Positions 33,399 to 57,651 of a stretch of DNA of 64,000 bases are shown piece by piece. Position numbers and translations under genes: made by a program. How positions within the stretch are numbered: position 1 is the first letter of the stretch; the number at the start of each line of letters is the position of its first letter. The DNA lies in the IMG/VR virus record IMGVR_UViG_3300022866_000322, positions 157,343-221,342 of that record; one strand, written 5' to 3'. A model generated the notes under the pieces. It had not been told where the DNA came from. It searched no databases and was given only the letters and a program-made list of their open reading frames with translations.

Positions 33399-34910
33399 TT
33401 AACTGTCGGAAAGAACAACTCCGACGCCTAATGTATTAAAAGCATATCTGCCAGCATTAAAAAACAATGACCCAGGTCTATCTTGGCTGTCTACTACCAA
33501 ATCTGCATTTTGTTTCCATTCTTTAACCTTGGAAGATATTACTGTTGTGTATACACTAGATATTCTTGAATCAAGAATACCAATATTTGCTCCTGCTGAA
33601 TTTATAGCCCTGAGCTTTGCTAGTCCTTCTACGTTTGCAAACAACGCACTTTGTACAACTTGTGTTGTTCTTATTGCAACGTTAGTCAAATCTTCAACAG
33701 TGGAGTATAGTTTTCTTTCGCTTAGTGGAGTTGCGGAAGTTAGCGTAAACTTACTTGCTATGTCTGCTATGCCACTGTCAACATATTGCTGGTATGCTGT
33801 ATCTGCACTGCCCAAATAACTTAACGTGTTTGCCAAGTTGATAGCAAGATTTGATGTGCGAGCAATAACATAACTCAAGTCTGTGTTTCGTAACCTTGAC
33901 ACTGTTCCTGTCGCAATGTTACTGGTAATTGCTTTTCCTAATCTGAATGTACTGTTGTTTACAGTGTCTGTCATGGTGTGTATTTCGTATATACCATTAT
34001 AAGTTCCAGCACCCGACACCTGCACAGGTAATCCTTGCACAAACAGTGTTCTTAATCCTGTTGGAGATACGTCACTTAACGAATCGTTTGCACTGCCGAT
34101 ACTGCTAACAGGGTATTGTGCTGAACTGGTGACAGTTCCTGTGTCAACTGTAACAACAATGTTTGCGTTGCCTTGGTGTGGATCACTGTAGTCAAATTCA
34201 AACAAGTTTATTACATTGCCGACTGTTTTAACCCCGTTAAGCGAAGTGAGTAGTACGTCGGCTAGATTAGATTTACCTAGATTTGTATCCACTGTTACAG
34301 TTCTTCCTGAACCAAAACTGTGCGTAGCAGGGAAGGTGTTTATGAATGCAACATTACTCACTCGAGAAACATTAGCAGTAATATATACTTCGTCAGGCAC
34401 AGTAAAACTGGTGCGATAGGTGGATATATGATCCTGGAACTGGTATGCCACAGCAAGAATACCACAAATAATATCACCAGTGTCCCCGACTGTGATAACT
34501 CTTGCGTCTATGCATGCTTTGTATTGTTCAGTTAGATACCGTTCCATTATGCTATCTTGCACTGCTTGATTACTTAGGAAAGTTGCGATCGAGTCAATGC
34601 CATCTTTGCCTGACCATACTTCGCCATTTTCTATCAGATAACCATAATTAATTAGGGTCTTTATATGTACAGCGTATCTACCAAATCTTGGACCTAGGCT
34701 GTAGGCTAAGTTATTACCTGTTTCCATATAAGCAATTTGTGTCATCAATCCTTTAATACTATTCCGGCGTAGACCAGGAATACCAGGACTTATACTATCT
34801 ATCGAAACACCAAGTGCCGCACTGGGCAAGTTTAATATGCTCCTCGGAGCCAATTGGTTTGTCCTTGGTGCTTGCTTGGCTACAATAATGCCTTGATTTG
34901 GAATAGCCAT
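33399..34910 (-). CDS. Baseplate-associated protein, possibly a lysozyme-like domain with a large insertion
   Basis: IAYMETG..Y..GRY..FL.NQAVQD..GILAVAYQF resembles a lysozyme-like fold. It is followed by ~300 aa of S/T-rich sequence and a C-terminal KEWK..D..FFNAGRYA. Confidence 0.5.
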   Translation of the reverse strand: MAIPNQGIIVAKQAPRTNQLAPRSILNLPSAALGVSIDSISPGIPGLRRNSIKGLMTQIAYMETGNNLAYSLGPRFGRYAVHIKTLINYGYLIENGEVWSGKDGIDSIATFLSNQAVQDSIMERYLTEQYKACIDARVITVGDTGDIICGILAVAYQFQDHISTYRTSFTVPDEVYITANVSRVSNVAFINTFPATHSFGSGRTVTVDTNLGKSNLADVLLTSLNGVKTVGNVINLFEFDYSDPHQGNANIVVTVDTGTVTSSAQYPVSSIGSANDSLSDVSPTGLRTLFVQGLPVQVSGAGTYNGIYEIHTMTDTVNNSTFRLGKAITSNIATGTVSRLRNTDLSYVIARTSNLAINLANTLSYLGSADTAYQQYVDSGIADIASKFTLTSATPLSERKLYSTVEDLTNVAIRTTQVVQSALFANVEGLAKLRAINSAGANIGILDSRISSVYTTVISSKVKEWKQNADLVVDSQDRPGSLFFNAGRYAFNTLGVGVVLSDS

Positions 34911-45980: not shown

Positions 45981-46403
45981 ATGTCATGGTTATTTGAATC
46001 TAAAGAAATAGAAGTACTACCAGAAGATTGTGTTGGATTCGTTTATTTGATAACGAATTTAACAAATAACCGTAAATACATCGGGAAGAAGCTTGCACGG
46101 TTTAAAACCACCAAGCCCCCACTTAAAGGCAGGAAGAACAAACGCCGTGGAACAAAAGAAAGTAACTGGCGTGAATATTATGGCTCAAACGACGAACTCA
46201 ACAAAGACATAGAACAACTAGGCACAGAAAACTTTCAAAGAGAAATACTCTACTATTGTAAAAGCAAGGCAGAATGCAGTTATATCGAGGCACGAGAACA
46301 ATTCAGACACAAAGTCTTAGAAACACCACAATACTATAACGGACATATACAAGTCCGTGTCCATGGCTCCCACATTATAAACAAATTAAGTAGTAACAGC
46401 TAA
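45981..46403 (+). CDS. Small GIY-YIG-family nuclease-like protein
   Basis: GFVYLITNLTNNRKYIGKK (GIY-YIG), YYGSND, FQREIL, E..EQF..YYN. Catalytic domain only. Confidence 0.8.
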   Translation: MSWLFESKEIEVLPEDCVGFVYLITNLTNNRKYIGKKLARFKTTKPPLKGRKNKRRGTKESNWREYYGSNDELNKDIEQLGTENFQREILYYCKSKAECSYIEAREQFRHKVLETPQYYNGHIQVRVHGSHIINKLSSNS

Positions 46404-46826
46404 CACAGGCTAATCTCGTGTGTACCAAACCTGACAGTAACGTGTGCAGGGACGTAAGACTTGCCGCTACAGCAAGCACTCAATCACTACCCATATGGAT
46501 GAAGACTCTCAATGCTAGAGTTTGATTGTTTGAACAGGATTCAATAAAGCTAAAAAGACGTAGTAGCGATACTACACGTTTATGTAATATGTTAGCGTAT
46601 GTTATATAAATCGCCGTTGTTATAAAGACGGAGCTCGAGGTACCGGACAACCGCCTCTGTAATGCTCTAATGCTAAGTGACTGTTATACTCAGATGAAGC
46701 AGTTTACTTTTTTGCCCGCCCTGGGCAAAGAGTGACCATGTGATCTAGATGAAACGTCTAAAAACATATCATTAAAAAACAAGTTGATGAGTGATAACGA
46801 AATCAACAGACTAACGAAGTTAGTCT
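46404..46826 (+). ncRNA. Candidate structured non-coding RNA or origin-like element (unassigned)
   Basis: ~420 nt with no ORF in a gene-dense genome. It contains many stems, several with G-U pairs (details in findings). Confidence 0.55.
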
Positions 46827-54988: not shown

Positions 54989-56173
54989 ATGACACAAGCA
55001 CTATTAGAAAGCCGTTGGGGCGAAACAAAAGATGCCCTGTTAGAAGGACTAAATGGCTCCAAGCGTACTACAATGGGAGTTATTCTTGAAAACACCCGCA
55101 AGAGTTTGCAAGAGACCGCTACTGCTGGCTCAACAGCCGCTGGTAACGTTGCTACATTGAACCGTGTAATTTTACCAGTCATTAGACGAGTAATGCCAAC
55201 CGTTATTGCTAACGAAATTGTTGGTGTACAGCCTATGACAGGTCCAGTTGCACAGATTCACACACTACGTGTACGTTATGCTGATAACGCTACATCAACA
55301 GCAGGTGCGCCATTTGATACAAGCGTTACTGCTGGTGACGAAGCACTATCACCATTTAAGATTGCTACAGTATATTCAGGTAGTACTGCTACCGGTCGTG
55401 CTGACAGCACAAGTACACTTGAAGGTACACCAGGTAACAAGATCAACGTCCAGATCTTAAAGCAAGTTGTTGAAGCTAAGACACGTAAGCTATCAGCACG
55501 TTGGACATTCGAAGCCGCTCAAGATGCGCAAGCAATGCACGGCTTAGATATTGAAGCAGAAGTTATGGCAGCTCTTGCACAAGAGATTACAGTTGAAATT
55601 GATCAAGAAGTTCTTGGTTCACTTCGTAGTCTTGCTGGTACTGAGTTCACATATAACCAGGCAGCAGTATCTGGTACAGCTACTTACGTTGGTGATGAGC
55701 ATGCCGCATTGGCAGTTCTTATCAACAGAACAGCTAACTTGATTGCATCACGCACACGTCGTGGCGCAGGTAACTGGGCAGTTGTTTCACCAGCCGCTTT
55801 AACAGTTCTCCAAAGCGCAACAACAAGTGCTTTTGCACGTACAACTGAAGGCACATTTGAAGCACCTACAAACACCAAGTTTGTTGGTACATTGAATGGC
55901 GCAATGAAAGTTTATGTAGACAGCTATGCTGGCGATGCACAGGCAGTTCTAGTTGGTTACAAAGGTTCAAGCGAAGCAGATGCAGCCGCATTCTATTGCC
56001 CATATGTTCCATTAATGAGCAGTGGTGTTGTGTTGGATCCATCAACACTTGAGCCAGTAGTTGGCTTTATGACCCGCTACGGGTACGTAGAGCTCACCAA
56101 TACAGCATCATCGTTTGGTAATGCAGCCGACTATCTCGGGGAAATCGCAGTTTCTAACTTGTCTTTCCAGTAA
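54989..56173 (+). CDS. gp23: Major capsid protein
   Basis: RRVMPTVIANEIVGVQPMTGP..KTRKLSARWTFEAAQDAQAMHGLDIEAE..EITVEIDQE..FYCPYVPL..GFMTRYG. Confidence 0.97.
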   Translation: MTQALLESRWGETKDALLEGLNGSKRTTMGVILENTRKSLQETATAGSTAAGNVATLNRVILPVIRRVMPTVIANEIVGVQPMTGPVAQIHTLRVRYADNATSTAGAPFDTSVTAGDEALSPFKIATVYSGSTATGRADSTSTLEGTPGNKINVQILKQVVEAKTRKLSARWTFEAAQDAQAMHGLDIEAEVMAALAQEITVEIDQEVLGSLRSLAGTEFTYNQAAVSGTATYVGDEHAALAVLINRTANLIASRTRRGAGNWAVVSPAALTVLQSATTSAFARTTEGTFEAPTNTKFVGTLNGAMKVYVDSYAGDAQAVLVGYKGSSEADAAAFYCPYVPLMSSGVVLDPSTLEPVVGFMTRYGYVELTNTASSFGNAADYLGEIAVSNLSFQ

Positions 56174-56192
56174 TAGTAACAAGCAAAAACAG

Positions 56193-56218
56193 AAAAGGGG
56201 TCGCAAGACCCTTTTTTT
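56193..56218 (+). terminator. Intrinsic terminator after the capsid gene
   Basis: AAAAGGGGTC-GCAA-GACCC followed by TTTTTTT. Confidence 0.9.
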
Positions 56219-56275
56219 GTGACTTAAAACTCTATTTGATTCAACACCTTTTCTGTCAATATAAAACAAAATAAC

Positions 56276-56306
56276 TTGACTTAATATGACGGTTAGTGTA
56301 TAAATA
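56276..56306 (+). promoter_or_regulatory. Composite promoter: sigma70 TTGACT-17-TATAAA whose -10 box is also the late promoter TATAAATA
   Basis: TTGACT at 56276-56281 and TATAAATA at 56299-56306; the predicted +1 lies just before the first aptamer. Confidence 0.8.
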
Positions 56307-56311
56307 TATAT

Positions 56312-56363
56312 ACGTTCAGCTGAGAGGCCGGAAGTAGACTTCATTATTAGTCGAAGGAACGCA
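56312..56363 (+). ncRNA. Glutamine-I riboswitch aptamer (glnA RNA motif), copy 1
   Basis: P1 CGTTC/GAACG; P2 GCT-GAGA-GGC; CGGAAGTA E-loop strand; P3 GACT-TCATTATT-AGTC; GAAG. This fits the glnA motif layout as I recall it. Confidence 0.85.
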
Positions 56364-56368
56364 TTATC

Positions 56369-56420
56369 ATCGTTCATCTCGAAAGAGACGGAAGTAGGTA
56401 ATGGTTACCGAAGGAACGCA
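56369..56420 (+). ncRNA. Glutamine-I riboswitch aptamer (glnA RNA motif), copy 2
   Basis: P1 CGTTC/GAACG; P2 TCTC-GAAA-GAGA; CGGAAGTA; P3 GGTAA-TGG-TTACC; GAAG. Compensatory stem changes relative to copy 1. Confidence 0.9.
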
Positions 56421-56447
56421 CCTAACTTTAAAAAGGAGGGTGTTAAA

Positions 56448-56555
56448 ATGACAATGTGGACTCAATATTGTAGACTACATGCACTTGATGACTATCGCAA
56501 GTTATGCATGTTGAAACTTTTGTTGTTGCGTACATTACACAACACATACAAGTGA
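56448..56555 (+). CDS. 35-aa small protein under riboswitch control (MTMWTQYCRLHALDDYRKLCMLKLLLLRTLHNTYK)
   Basis: Strong SD AAGGAGG 8 nt upstream; bracketed by the aptamers and a terminator; below the ORF-track size cutoff. Confidence 0.75.
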   Translation: MTMWTQYCRLHALDDYRKLCMLKLLLLRTLHNTYK

Positions 56556-56561
56556 ACTTCG

Positions 56562-56585
56562 AGGGGTGTAACTGCCCCTTTTTTT
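56562..56585 (+). terminator. Intrinsic terminator after the small ORF
   Basis: AGGGGTG-TAAC-TGCCCCT followed by a T run. Confidence 0.8.
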
Positions 56586-56622
56586 ATAACTGCTATTACA
56601 TATTATTTAAGGAGGATCTTGG

Positions 56623-56907
56623 ATGAATACAGCTACAGAAGTAAAGTGCGAAACGCTCAATATCCGCATAGAACCCAAAGTTCGAGATCTAATTGATCGT
56701 GCGGCGAAGTCACGCGGCAAAAATCTCACGGACTTCATACTGGAGTCTGCTCGTCTCGCTGCAGAAGACACTCTGCTCGACCAGGTGATCATGGCGACCA
56801 GCCCAGACGCCTTTGCGCAGTTTCAGGCTCGCTTGGATATGCTACCTAAGCCTAATGACCGTTTACGCAAAACTATGCTCACGCCTGCTCCCTGGGAGCG
56901 TGAATGA
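56623..56907 (+). CDS. tacA: TacA/DUF1778 ribbon-helix-helix antitoxin (orphan)
   Basis: ETLNIRIEP..RDLIDRAAKSRGKNLTDFILESARLAAED.L..F.ARLD..P.PN.RLRKTM.TPAPWE closely follows the TacA pattern; AAGGAGG RBS; about 53% GC by hand count. Confidence 0.88.
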   Translation: MNTATEVKCETLNIRIEPKVRDLIDRAAKSRGKNLTDFILESARLAAEDTLLDQVIMATSPDAFAQFQARLDMLPKPNDRLRKTMLTPAPWERE

Positions 56908-56927
56908 AGTTGGCTGCTTTTTTATGA
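56904..56927 (+). pseudogene. Possible 5' remnant of the cognate GNAT toxin (ATG AAG TTG GCT.. then stop)
   Basis: ATGA start/stop overlap with the antitoxin, as in tacAT operons. The frame enters the AT-rich repeat and stops after 7 codons. Confidence 0.5.
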
Positions 56928-56936
56928 CTACTATTA

Positions 56937-56944
56937 CATAAATA
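56937..56944 (+). promoter_or_regulatory. Late promoter (CATAAATA)
   Basis: NATAAATA upstream of the gene at 57031; overlaps the right-hand direct repeat. Confidence 0.7.
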
Positions 56945-57030
56945 CTACTGTTCATATAAATCTTTATATGTTCTTATGCGGAACCAAACCGCGTAGGCCT
57001 AGAACGCCACTTAATTTAAGGAGAAACAAA

Positions 57031-57651
57031 ATGGGAAGACCTATAGCAAAAAAGTTTATTGGCGATGGCGTTGGCAAGATTGCAATTACAGCAGTTAAGT
57101 TTGCAAGCGGCAGCGAAGTTCTTAGCGGTGCAGATATTCAAAGACAAAGAACAGCTAAAAGTTTCGTTGTATCTGACGGAGCTAAAACAGAAACATGTAC
57201 ACTGGTTAACAAGTCAATTGGTGCCTTGGGTGCTAGTGAATTTACCATCAACGTTACCGACAACGATGGCGACCAACAGCAAGTTACCAAGATGACCAAC
57301 AGAAAAGTTTACACTGAAGGTACTACTTGGAAACAGTGGACAAAAGATGCCGACGGCTCAGCATCGGGTGCAGTTCAAAAAACAATCACAGGTGCAACAG
57401 CGGCCAACCCAGTTGTTATTACATCTGCCGGTCACGGACTTGCAAATGGAACTAAAATTTCAATCCGTAAAGTAGTTGGTATGGTTGAGCTTAACACTGA
57501 AACCGGCTATACAGTGGCAAGTACTGCAACTAACACTTTTGCATTATCTGGAGTTGACGGTAGTGGATTTACTACTTACACATCAGGTGGTGATGTAACT
57601 GTTGCGGCAGCAGGTGCAGACGATGTGATAATAGATACACAACAGTCTTAA
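57031..57651 (+). CDS. Virion protein with a C-terminal beta domain (E1_FCCH-like, common in phage tail proteins)
   Basis: ITGATAANPVVITSAGHGL.NG..I.I..V.GM.ELN..YTV..NTFAL. Start moved to the ATG at 57031 (AAGGAG RBS). Confidence 0.65.
   Translation: MGRPIAKKFIGDGVGKIAITAVKFASGSEVLSGADIQRQRTAKSFVVSDGAKTETCTLVNKSIGALGASEFTINVTDNDGDQQQVTKMTNRKVYTEGTTWKQWTKDADGSASGAVQKTITGATAANPVVITSAGHGLANGTKISIRKVVGMVELNTETGYTVASTATNTFALSGVDGSGFTTYTSGGDVTVAAAGADDVIIDTQQS

Follow-up and report, generated by a model that had tools for sequence, protein, structure and literature searches.

A toxin-less tacA gene of bacterial origin in a salt-lake jumbo phage and its possible use against host TacT

Results

A tacA gene flanked by a direct repeat in a jumbo-phage contig

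The DNA analysed here (the window, 64,000 nt) is the final 64 kb of the 221-kb viral contig IMGVR_UViG_3300022866_000322 of IMG/VR, a jumbo-phage contig with a GC content of 40.0% and a completeness estimate of 63%. Downstream of its major capsid protein gene we found a short insert carrying tacA, a gene for an antitoxin of the TacA family, which in bacterial toxin-antitoxin operons is paired with a GNAT toxin, TacT. The insert and its borders consist of the following features, in window coordinates.

56580..56602, plus strand: copy 1 of a direct repeat, made up of a T-run, a spacer and the first half of a promoter-like ATAAATA...TGTTC element, cut off at ...ACATA
56603..56606, plus strand: TTAT, a four-base filler at the left junction whose origin cannot be assigned (blastn homology begins at 56607)
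56607..56912, plus strand: captured bacterial segment, 306 nt, with the ribosome-binding site, the entire tacA and the first three tacT codons
56623..56907, plus strand: tacA coding sequence, 94 aa (PF08681 TacA1, E=8.2e-23, 80.6 bits, cut-off 21)
56633..56726, plus strand: 5' block with all ten phage-specific substitutions, from codon comparison and a breakpoint scan
56727..56912, plus strand: 3' block, 186 nt, equal to the co-occurring bacterial allele except for position 56857 in L091/L092, and encoding the toxin-binding half
56772..56895, plus strand: hook-only region, 124 nt, TacA residues 51-91, 100% identical in a second phage (G406:33619-33742)
56904..56927, plus strand: tacT remnant, entered through an ATGA overlap and reading MKLAAFL before a stop, of which only MKL (to 56912) is donor-derived
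56913..56917, plus strand: five bases, GCTGC, at the right junction, as defined by alignment with the related contigs L007/L008
56918..56940, plus strand: copy 2 of the direct repeat, running into an intact ATAAATA...TGTTC element before a freshwater-2 RNA

A previous reading of the letters alone (the sequence-only reading) had described a TacA/DUF1778 open reading frame (ORF) of about 53% GC in an AT-richer genome, with a Shine-Dalgarno sequence and an ATGA overlap into a second frame that dies after seven codons. The Pfam match agrees with this assignment, and all of these signals are present: the tacA ATG is preceded, at a distance of 7 nt, by the ribosome-binding site AAGGAGG (56609-56615), and the second frame is the seven-codon MKLAAFL. 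The GC content of the ORF was measured as 51.2%, a value equalled by only 0.43% of 285-nt windows in the contig, and its GC at third codon positions is 50.5% compared with 29-30% in the flanking phage genes. The phage TacA matched chain C of the Salmonella complex in PDB entry 7AK7 (E=2.8e-32) and has the same length as its 109 close homologues.

On alignment with KacA, residues 1-50 correspond to a ribbon-helix-helix DNA-binding domain and residues ~51-91 to the TacT-binding hook. In solved relatives this C-terminal hook wraps around TacT and blocks the acetyl-CoA site. The phage protein retains R80, aligned to R77 of KacA, together with the PNDRLRKTM...PAPW segment, and its residues 36-94 are identical to those of the bacterial protein P0122 except for D79N. 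In KacA, R77 is essential for neutralisation, and KacT is still neutralised by KacA without its first 10 residues (PMC6698736).

The insert derives from a betaproteobacterial tacAT operon

Through blastn comparison with bacterial tacAT loci, we found that the captured segment is 95.1% identical to L091/L092, 93.1% to L002 and 89.7% to L003, and that the homology begins sharply at 56607 and stops equally sharply at 56912, in the third tacT codon. At the protein level more than 1300 homologues were found, the best of them 80-91% identical, from metagenomes and from metagenome-assembled genomes (MAGs) of Burkholderiaceae/Comamonadaceae; the nearest named relatives belong to Comamonadaceae-type MAGs (84-88%). 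In the donor-type loci, tacA overlaps a 169-aa GNAT toxin gene by 4 bp, and this toxin is canonical in L003 and L092. The donor TacT is full length and an orthologue of Salmonella TacT3 (7AK7_A, E=9e-64). These bacterial loci often adjoin an integrase or lie within islands of other toxin-antitoxin pairs. Taken together, the alignments show that tacA originated as a piece of a betaproteobacterial tacAT operon, and the capture and toxin loss proposed by the sequence-only reading are borne out by their sharp ends.

What was left behind is equally clear. The donors share a conserved 8+8 palindrome at -56 to -39 of tacA, a candidate operator, which lies outside the captured segment and occurs zero times in the phage contig, leaving the phage gene without the autoregulated promoter of a tacAT module. 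No TacT-like sequence was found in the 221-kb contig, which is an estimated 63% of the genome and where the antitoxin is followed by three tacT codons instead of a GNAT toxin gene. A search of five records of related jumbo phages, including three that are 91-100% complete, gave no TacT either. A complete phage-borne toxin-antitoxin module was rejected on these grounds, with no toxin in the contig or in its relatives.

The MAG contig with the closest bacterial TacA (L002, 91% aa identity) has a downstream toxin ORF of only 57 aa (L002:4001-4455), so near-orphan copies of tacA occur in bacteria too. The island around this locus also encodes an integrase, ParE, HigB, PrlF-YhaV and an AAA_21 + RloB pair. 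The flanks of the donor locus had no close match in five Polaromonas/Aalborgicola genomes.

Empty sites and the course of the insertion

The two copies of the direct repeat match at 21 of 23 positions, as the sequence-only reading had counted; in shuffles of the surrounding 1.5 kb, 0 of 100 reached 21/23 and the maximum was 18. That reading had also asked for an empty site with one repeat copy in related phages, and we compared 80 viral contigs with related capsid genes. None of the 80 loci encodes TacA (0/80). The two closest of these contigs, L007 and L008, are ~94% identical to the window at the nucleotide level over 3.2 kb and carry the riboswitches, the small ORF, the terminator, one repeat copy and the freshwater-2 RNA of this region without tacA. 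The capsid-side site of the second phage (G406) is also empty, with a single repeat copy and no tacA. In blastn alignments, window segments 56237-56584 and 56917-57039 meet at the same few bases of L008. Since the flanks abut there, the insertion measures ~338 bp, with a target duplication of 23 bp (~28 bp if GCTGC/GCCCC is counted). The larger figure would apply if the GCTGC at the right junction stems, in diverged form, from the 3' arm (GCCCC) of the upstream terminator, giving a ~28-nt duplication; no hairpin terminator forms in the 56913-56917 region (z -0.28).

The ATAAATA...TGTTC element is conserved just upstream of the freshwater-2 RNA in the relatives, and the insertion point falls inside it. 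We call it promoter-like because of this conservation alone; it looks like such an element. The longer pattern ATAAATA...GTTC occurs three times in the contig against ~1 expected, and three successive units of the window each terminate in a T-run followed by RTRACT. The direct repeat as a genome-wide motif gave 6 loose matches against 3.5 expected, and the idea that it represents a promoter family was rejected because it is not genome-wide. The motif TATAAATA was not enriched in the contig either (4 against 5.3 expected). A transposon or insertion sequence was likewise rejected: the insert ends bear no inverted repeats, there is no transposase, the 338-bp insert codes for TacA only, and the duplication is 23-28 bp compared with the 2-14 bp of such elements. 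From the sequence, the event would consist of two illegitimate joints, of which the second picks up again 23-28 bp upstream of the first. Between the repeat copies there are differences at 2 of 23 positions, in keeping with an insertion of some age. On an evolutionary scale, the recent acquisition that had been proposed is supported by the donor alignments, the empty site and independent assemblies.

The junctions are present in independent assemblies

The sequence-only reading had asked that read mapping across both junctions exclude a chimeric assembly. The junction evidence gathered here comes from per-run Logan contigs rather than raw reads, and in this form it supports both junctions. The JGI, ENA and Logan assemblies contain at least 24 contigs that encode exactly this TacA protein, among which L088 is 100% identical to the window over 5285 nt and L178 is 100% identical over 6.3 kb. 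In 18 metagenome runs of different salt-lake samples, 94-99% of the words sampled from 56200-57200 are present. A single 5382-nt Logan contig of run X1 crosses both junctions with zero differences, and overlapping unitigs cross both in runs X9 and X13.

Two hybrid contigs were observed. L089 (232 kb; L089:1-8285) is phage up to tacA and continues with bacterial tacT and sugar-metabolism genes; L090 (47 kb; L090:3985-4444) is its reciprocal, with the bacterial integrase side, tacA and then phage downstream sequence. These are probably assembly chimeras, because phage and bacterium share 130-186 identical nt and the assemblies used k=141. They could also be real reciprocal phage-host recombinants, which would fit the idea of gene conversion discussed below.

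The existence of such hybrids, and the shared identical stretch behind them, would favour the view that an assembler also joined a bacterial tacA into the phage contig of the window. This is extremely improbable: the insert has phage DNA on both flanks, the right junction has no sequence in common with bacteria, the left 104 nt bear phage-only substitutions found in no bacterial homologue, and the same arrangement recurs at 100% identity in other assemblies, with the X1 contig spanning both junctions.

The phage tacA is a mosaic with changes in the DNA-binding domain

Compared with its closest bacterial allele (L092), the phage tacA has 11 mismatches, 10 of which lie in the first 104 nt and 1 in the remaining 181 nt (Fisher p=3.5e-4). 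All ten 5' changes are specific to the phage lineage, because L092 and L002 agree with each other, and differ from the phage, at every one of these positions; at the single 3' position, 56857, the phage carries the majority residue, D79. The substitutions of the 5' block comprise four synonymous changes together with A4V, R9C, K17E, E19K and R35L. Residues R9, K17, E19 and R35 are invariant or nearly so in the 109 close homologues, and R9 and R35 are conserved also in TacAs down to 59% identity and in 7AK7. A literature search for contacts of TacA3 with DNA yielded nothing of use, and KacA, whose complex with DNA is solved, served as the reference. The KacA alignment, which is in the same register here, places positions 9 and 17 at the ribbon ends and position 35 at the start of helix 2. 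These replacements suggest that operator binding by the phage TacA may be weakened or altered.

In run X11, a bacterial allele was found with its own upstream sequence and with tacT beyond 56912, at a depth of ~4.7 compared with 11-16 for the phage. Over 56727-56912 the phage and bacterial alleles share unitigs, with no variant listed. The sequence-only reading had expected the closest homologue to point to the host. This expectation is half borne out: a near-identical tacAT allele is carried by a bacterium of the same samples.

Selection on the protein alone cannot explain the mosaic, since the synonymous changes are also limited to the 5' block. The simplest account of this pattern would be that the capture is older and that the 3' part has recombined recently, probably by gene conversion, with a host allele.

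A second jumbo phage carries the TacT-binding hook alone

A protein scan of viral contigs yielded four further contigs (L180-L183), up to 289 kb long and mutually identical over 6.2 kb. They represent a second, related jumbo phage, with 75-86% nucleotide identity to another part of the genome of the window's phage. Its 77-aa ORF (L183:2995-3228, equal to G406:C1 ~33575-33805) consists of 16 resident residues, TacA residues 51-91 and 20 resident residues. The graft has displaced ~292 nt from the middle of a resident gene (201 aa, of unknown function), whose resident orthologue is found at L184:1984-2589. The reading frame is kept across both joints, for which the chance is ~1 in 9, and the fusion ORF passes the Pfam TacA1 threshold (22.2 vs 21 bits). 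No full-length tacA was found in G406, which is 80% complete. Judged from these sequences, the second phage is an independent capture of the TacT-binding domain. Its junction sequences were found as loose ends in runs X9, X11 and X13, which places it in the same lake.

Both TacA and TacT are absent from three related jumbo phages of 91-100% completeness. Of the remaining viral contigs with TacA-like genes, six have TacT directly downstream, probably as whole modules on temperate elements. The one that does not is L199 (IMGVR_UViG_3300048577_000435), where a TacA-like gene of 43% identity (L199:1501-1746) has no TacT-like sequence within 1.5 kb.

Setting of the insert in the phage genome

Downstream of the capsid gene the order is a strong terminator, two glutamine riboswitches, a 35-aa ORF with its terminator, the tacA cassette, the freshwater-2 RNA and the next gene. 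The features outside the insert are as follows.

54989..56173, plus strand: major capsid protein gene of the T4 gp23 type (PF07068, E=3.5e-98), the upstream synteny anchor
56311-56365 and 56369-56422, plus strand: two tandem glutamine-riboswitch (glnA RNA) aptamers (Rfam RF01739, 46.7 and 61.1 bits, gathering score 35)
56448..56555, plus strand: small ORF of 35 aa, a resident phage gene with 63-67% aa matches in L007, L008 and L010
56561..56586, plus strand: hairpin and T-run terminator of the small ORF, from a terminator scan (fold dG -10.8 kcal/mol, z -2.07), whose T-run opens repeat copy 1
56953..57033, plus strand: freshwater-2 RNA motif (Rfam RF02980, 63.7 bits, gathering score 49.9), the downstream anchor of the insertion site

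The capsid protein is 97% identical in amino acids to those of L007/L008. A near-identity search of the phage database with this region gave zero matches, and a distant search gave as DNA relatives jumbo myoviruses of ~290-490 kb from many hosts, matched in the capsid gene only. The spacer from the capsid gene to the freshwater-2 RNA varies among relatives from ~75 nt (L022) through ~730 nt (L007/L008) to 3.7 kb (L019), and this spacer (window 56173-57031) is a hot spot of gene gain.

The riboswitch aptamers form the leader of the 35-aa ORF and are resident phage sequence, being present also in L007, L008 and L010, which have no tacA. The arrangement, in which a phage would sense glutamine next to its own main structural gene, is a puzzling one, and it is the same in these three relatives. 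The freshwater-2 RNA is the leader of the next phage gene (start 57031). It was also found at L007:4846-4929, L009:5757-5838, L010:5785-5872, L019:7733-7810 and L022:5269-5335, as a conserved 5' leader of the gene after the capsid region in many related jumbo phages, so at least part of this orphan Rfam family belongs to jumbo phages. The gene that it precedes (57031-57651, with 206 aa counted from the ATG at 57031) shows little conservation even among the closest relatives and has a Pfam match to the FCCH domain of ubiquitin-activating enzyme E1 (E=1e-9), which is odd for a gene of a phage structural region. A Polynucleobacter-1 RNA lies elsewhere inside the phage contig, at window 46398-46531 (93.7 bits, gathering score 37).

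Discussion

Proposed use of the captured antitoxin against host TacT

The best reading of the locus, and in our judgement a fairly probable one, is that the phage would use an orphan antitoxin against host TacT. Neutralisation of the toxin is favoured because the toxin and the operator are absent, the DNA-binding residues are eroded, and the second phage keeps the hook only. A bacterium with a near-identical tacA and an intact tacT co-occurs with the phage in run X11. A complex prediction for the donor TacT with phage TacA residues 45-94 scored 0.89, where the best control scored 0.00; of the solved complexes 51 of 78 came up to this mark, and of the mismatched pairs 2 of 108 did.

In the course of events that we propose, a lytic-type salt-lake jumbo phage acquired a 306-nt piece of the tacAT operon of a betaproteobacterium. 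The piece would have landed by illegitimate (non-homologous) recombination in the variable spacer that separates the capsid-gene region from the following structural gene, duplicating 23-28 bp of the target; the bacterial promoter, the palindromic candidate operator and the toxin were left behind. The unchanged C-terminal hook of the phage TacA would then bind free TacT, whether this comes from the host itself or from an integrative element that it carries. With TacT blocked, charged tRNA would not be acetylated, translation would continue and the phage cycle could be completed. The toxin-binding half appears to have been kept matched to the host allele through recombination with host tacA. 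We infer from the sequence that tacA is expressed, that its product binds TacT in vivo and that the phage benefits.

Several observations weigh against this proposal. The complex score expresses likeness and is not proof of binding, and it may reflect the predictor's familiarity with the solved 7AK7 complex. Transcription is a further difficulty: a terminator precedes tacA and no promoter belonging to the gene itself could be recognised, so that it is possibly poorly transcribed. With a terminator upstream, no own promoter and no hairpin terminator downstream, its transcription must depend on read-through. Of the sampled words, at most 10% are present in the RNA runs listed first, and none is listed for tacA alone. 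The ribbon residues T11, N13 and R15, which align with the base-contacting R8, D10 and R12 of KacA, are kept, and DNA binding may therefore persist. Sampling of 401 genomes from the family of Polaromonas and Aalborgicola did not bring up the donor species, the best match being 90% over 263 nt. PADLOC gave no match for TacA or for the donor TacT, TacAT not being a recognised anti-phage system, and a literature search linking DUF1778, GNAT and anti-phage activity found nothing relevant.

The same lack of an own promoter and the position behind a terminator would suit a neutral passenger, that is, a fragment of host DNA that was accidentally and recently fixed in a recombination-prone spacer and has no role in the phage. 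The wide variation in spacer length among relatives, the unameliorated GC content and the fact that the closest relatives manage without tacA point the same way. We nevertheless regard a mere passenger as unlikely, because the ORF is preserved intact at full length behind a strong ribosome-binding site, the same sequence recurs across many samples and assemblies, and the direct repeat should permit easy recombinational loss, yet the insert persists. The independent retention by the second phage of exactly the toxin-binding domain, with both joints in frame, also speaks against it. That domain-only capture bears equally on the view that the protein has become a regulator, whose ribbon-helix-helix domain, altered at four positions, would repress host tacAT promoters or regulate phage or host genes at new sites, with toxin binding as a secondary matter, since the second phage discards the DNA-binding domain entirely. 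A change of specificity would predict the clustering of substitutions in the DNA-binding domain, including the K17E/E19K charge swap, and the retained ribbon residues are in keeping with it. Against this stand the candidate operator, neither captured nor present in the phage contig, the three conserved basic residues (R9, K17 and R35), which are lost rather than exchanged, and the four synonymous changes in the same block, which point to age or recombination instead of selection; a repurposed regulator is thus a quite improbable account.

The sequence-only reading had proposed a counter-defence gene that either disarms host GNAT toxins or represses host tacAT promoters. The first half is still to be read as conditional, strengthened by the hook-only second phage and by the supportive complex prediction. 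Repression has become the weaker half, with three conserved basic residues replaced and a second phage that does without the DNA-binding domain.

Relation to known systems

By sequence, the phage TacA is alike in fold family to TacA3-TacT3 of Salmonella (PDB 7AK7) and the other members of the GNAT-RHH family (TacAT, AtaRT, KacAT and ItaRT). It has their two-domain antitoxin layout and the C-terminal PN(D)RL...PAPW hook, and shares the 4-bp ATGA overlap with its donors. Unlike these modules, it has no toxin gene, promoter or operator, is carried by a virulent-type jumbo phage and has R9, K17 and R35 replaced.

Orphan antitoxins are known as phage counter-defences: T4-like phages use DarG-like enzymes against DarTG1 (PMC11825919), and a DarG2-like protein of chimalliviruses is another phage orphan antitoxin (PMC13309987). 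The common point is a phage homologue of a host antitoxin without the toxin, with presumed neutralisation of the toxin during infection. The DarG-like proteins, however, are enzymes that reverse the modification made by the toxin and are experimentally proven, whereas TacA would be a stoichiometric binder and is known here from its sequence. A toxin-less gene annotated as TacA has been reported in the T4-like myovirus S-CREM1, a cyanophage (ORF106), and proposed to counter host toxin-antitoxin systems (PMC9964418). In that case the host genome was reported to be without TacAT, and a donor, an insertion site and a mosaic structure were not described (PMC9964418). Among 50,697 phage records, only two Synechococcus phages matched the TacA of our phage, at 38% identity.

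Repeat-flanked gene shuffling in the plastic regions of T4-type phages, with promoter/stem-loop cassettes, was reportedly described by Arbiol et al. in 2010. The present locus is similar in placing a small foreign ORF after a terminator and ahead of a promoter-like element, and in the duplication of the regulatory junction. It differs from those cassettes in having only two good repeat copies, and looks like a one-off target duplication.

Phage orphan antitoxins are thus already known; this locus stands out because its capture can be traced, because it has undergone mosaic exchange with a bacterium that co-occurs with the phage, and because a sister phage shows a parallel capture of one domain only. 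Donor, exact boundaries, target duplication, empty site and later mosaic exchange are all visible, making the locus an unusually complete record of a capture. The donor TacT, the full phage TacA and the 77-aa mini-antitoxin form a ready test set.

We put forward, as a tentative and rather doubtful extension, that the hook may be a mobile anti-toxin module in this lake, present as a full gene with a decaying DNA-binding domain in one phage and as a 41-codon graft in the other, and that repeated recombination with host tacA keeps both base-for-base the same as the host allele. GNAT-RHH modules are among the commonest toxin-antitoxin pairs and are known mainly from work on persistence, and an anti-phage role for them is not established. 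Two phages that independently retain the TacT-binding part, with a sequence identical to that of a co-occurring bacterial allele, are natural evidence that TacT matters during infection. If the mobile-hook idea is true, GNAT-RHH (TacAT) modules would be an active abortive-infection defence in nature, and phages would track the toxin by gene conversion rather than by mutation.

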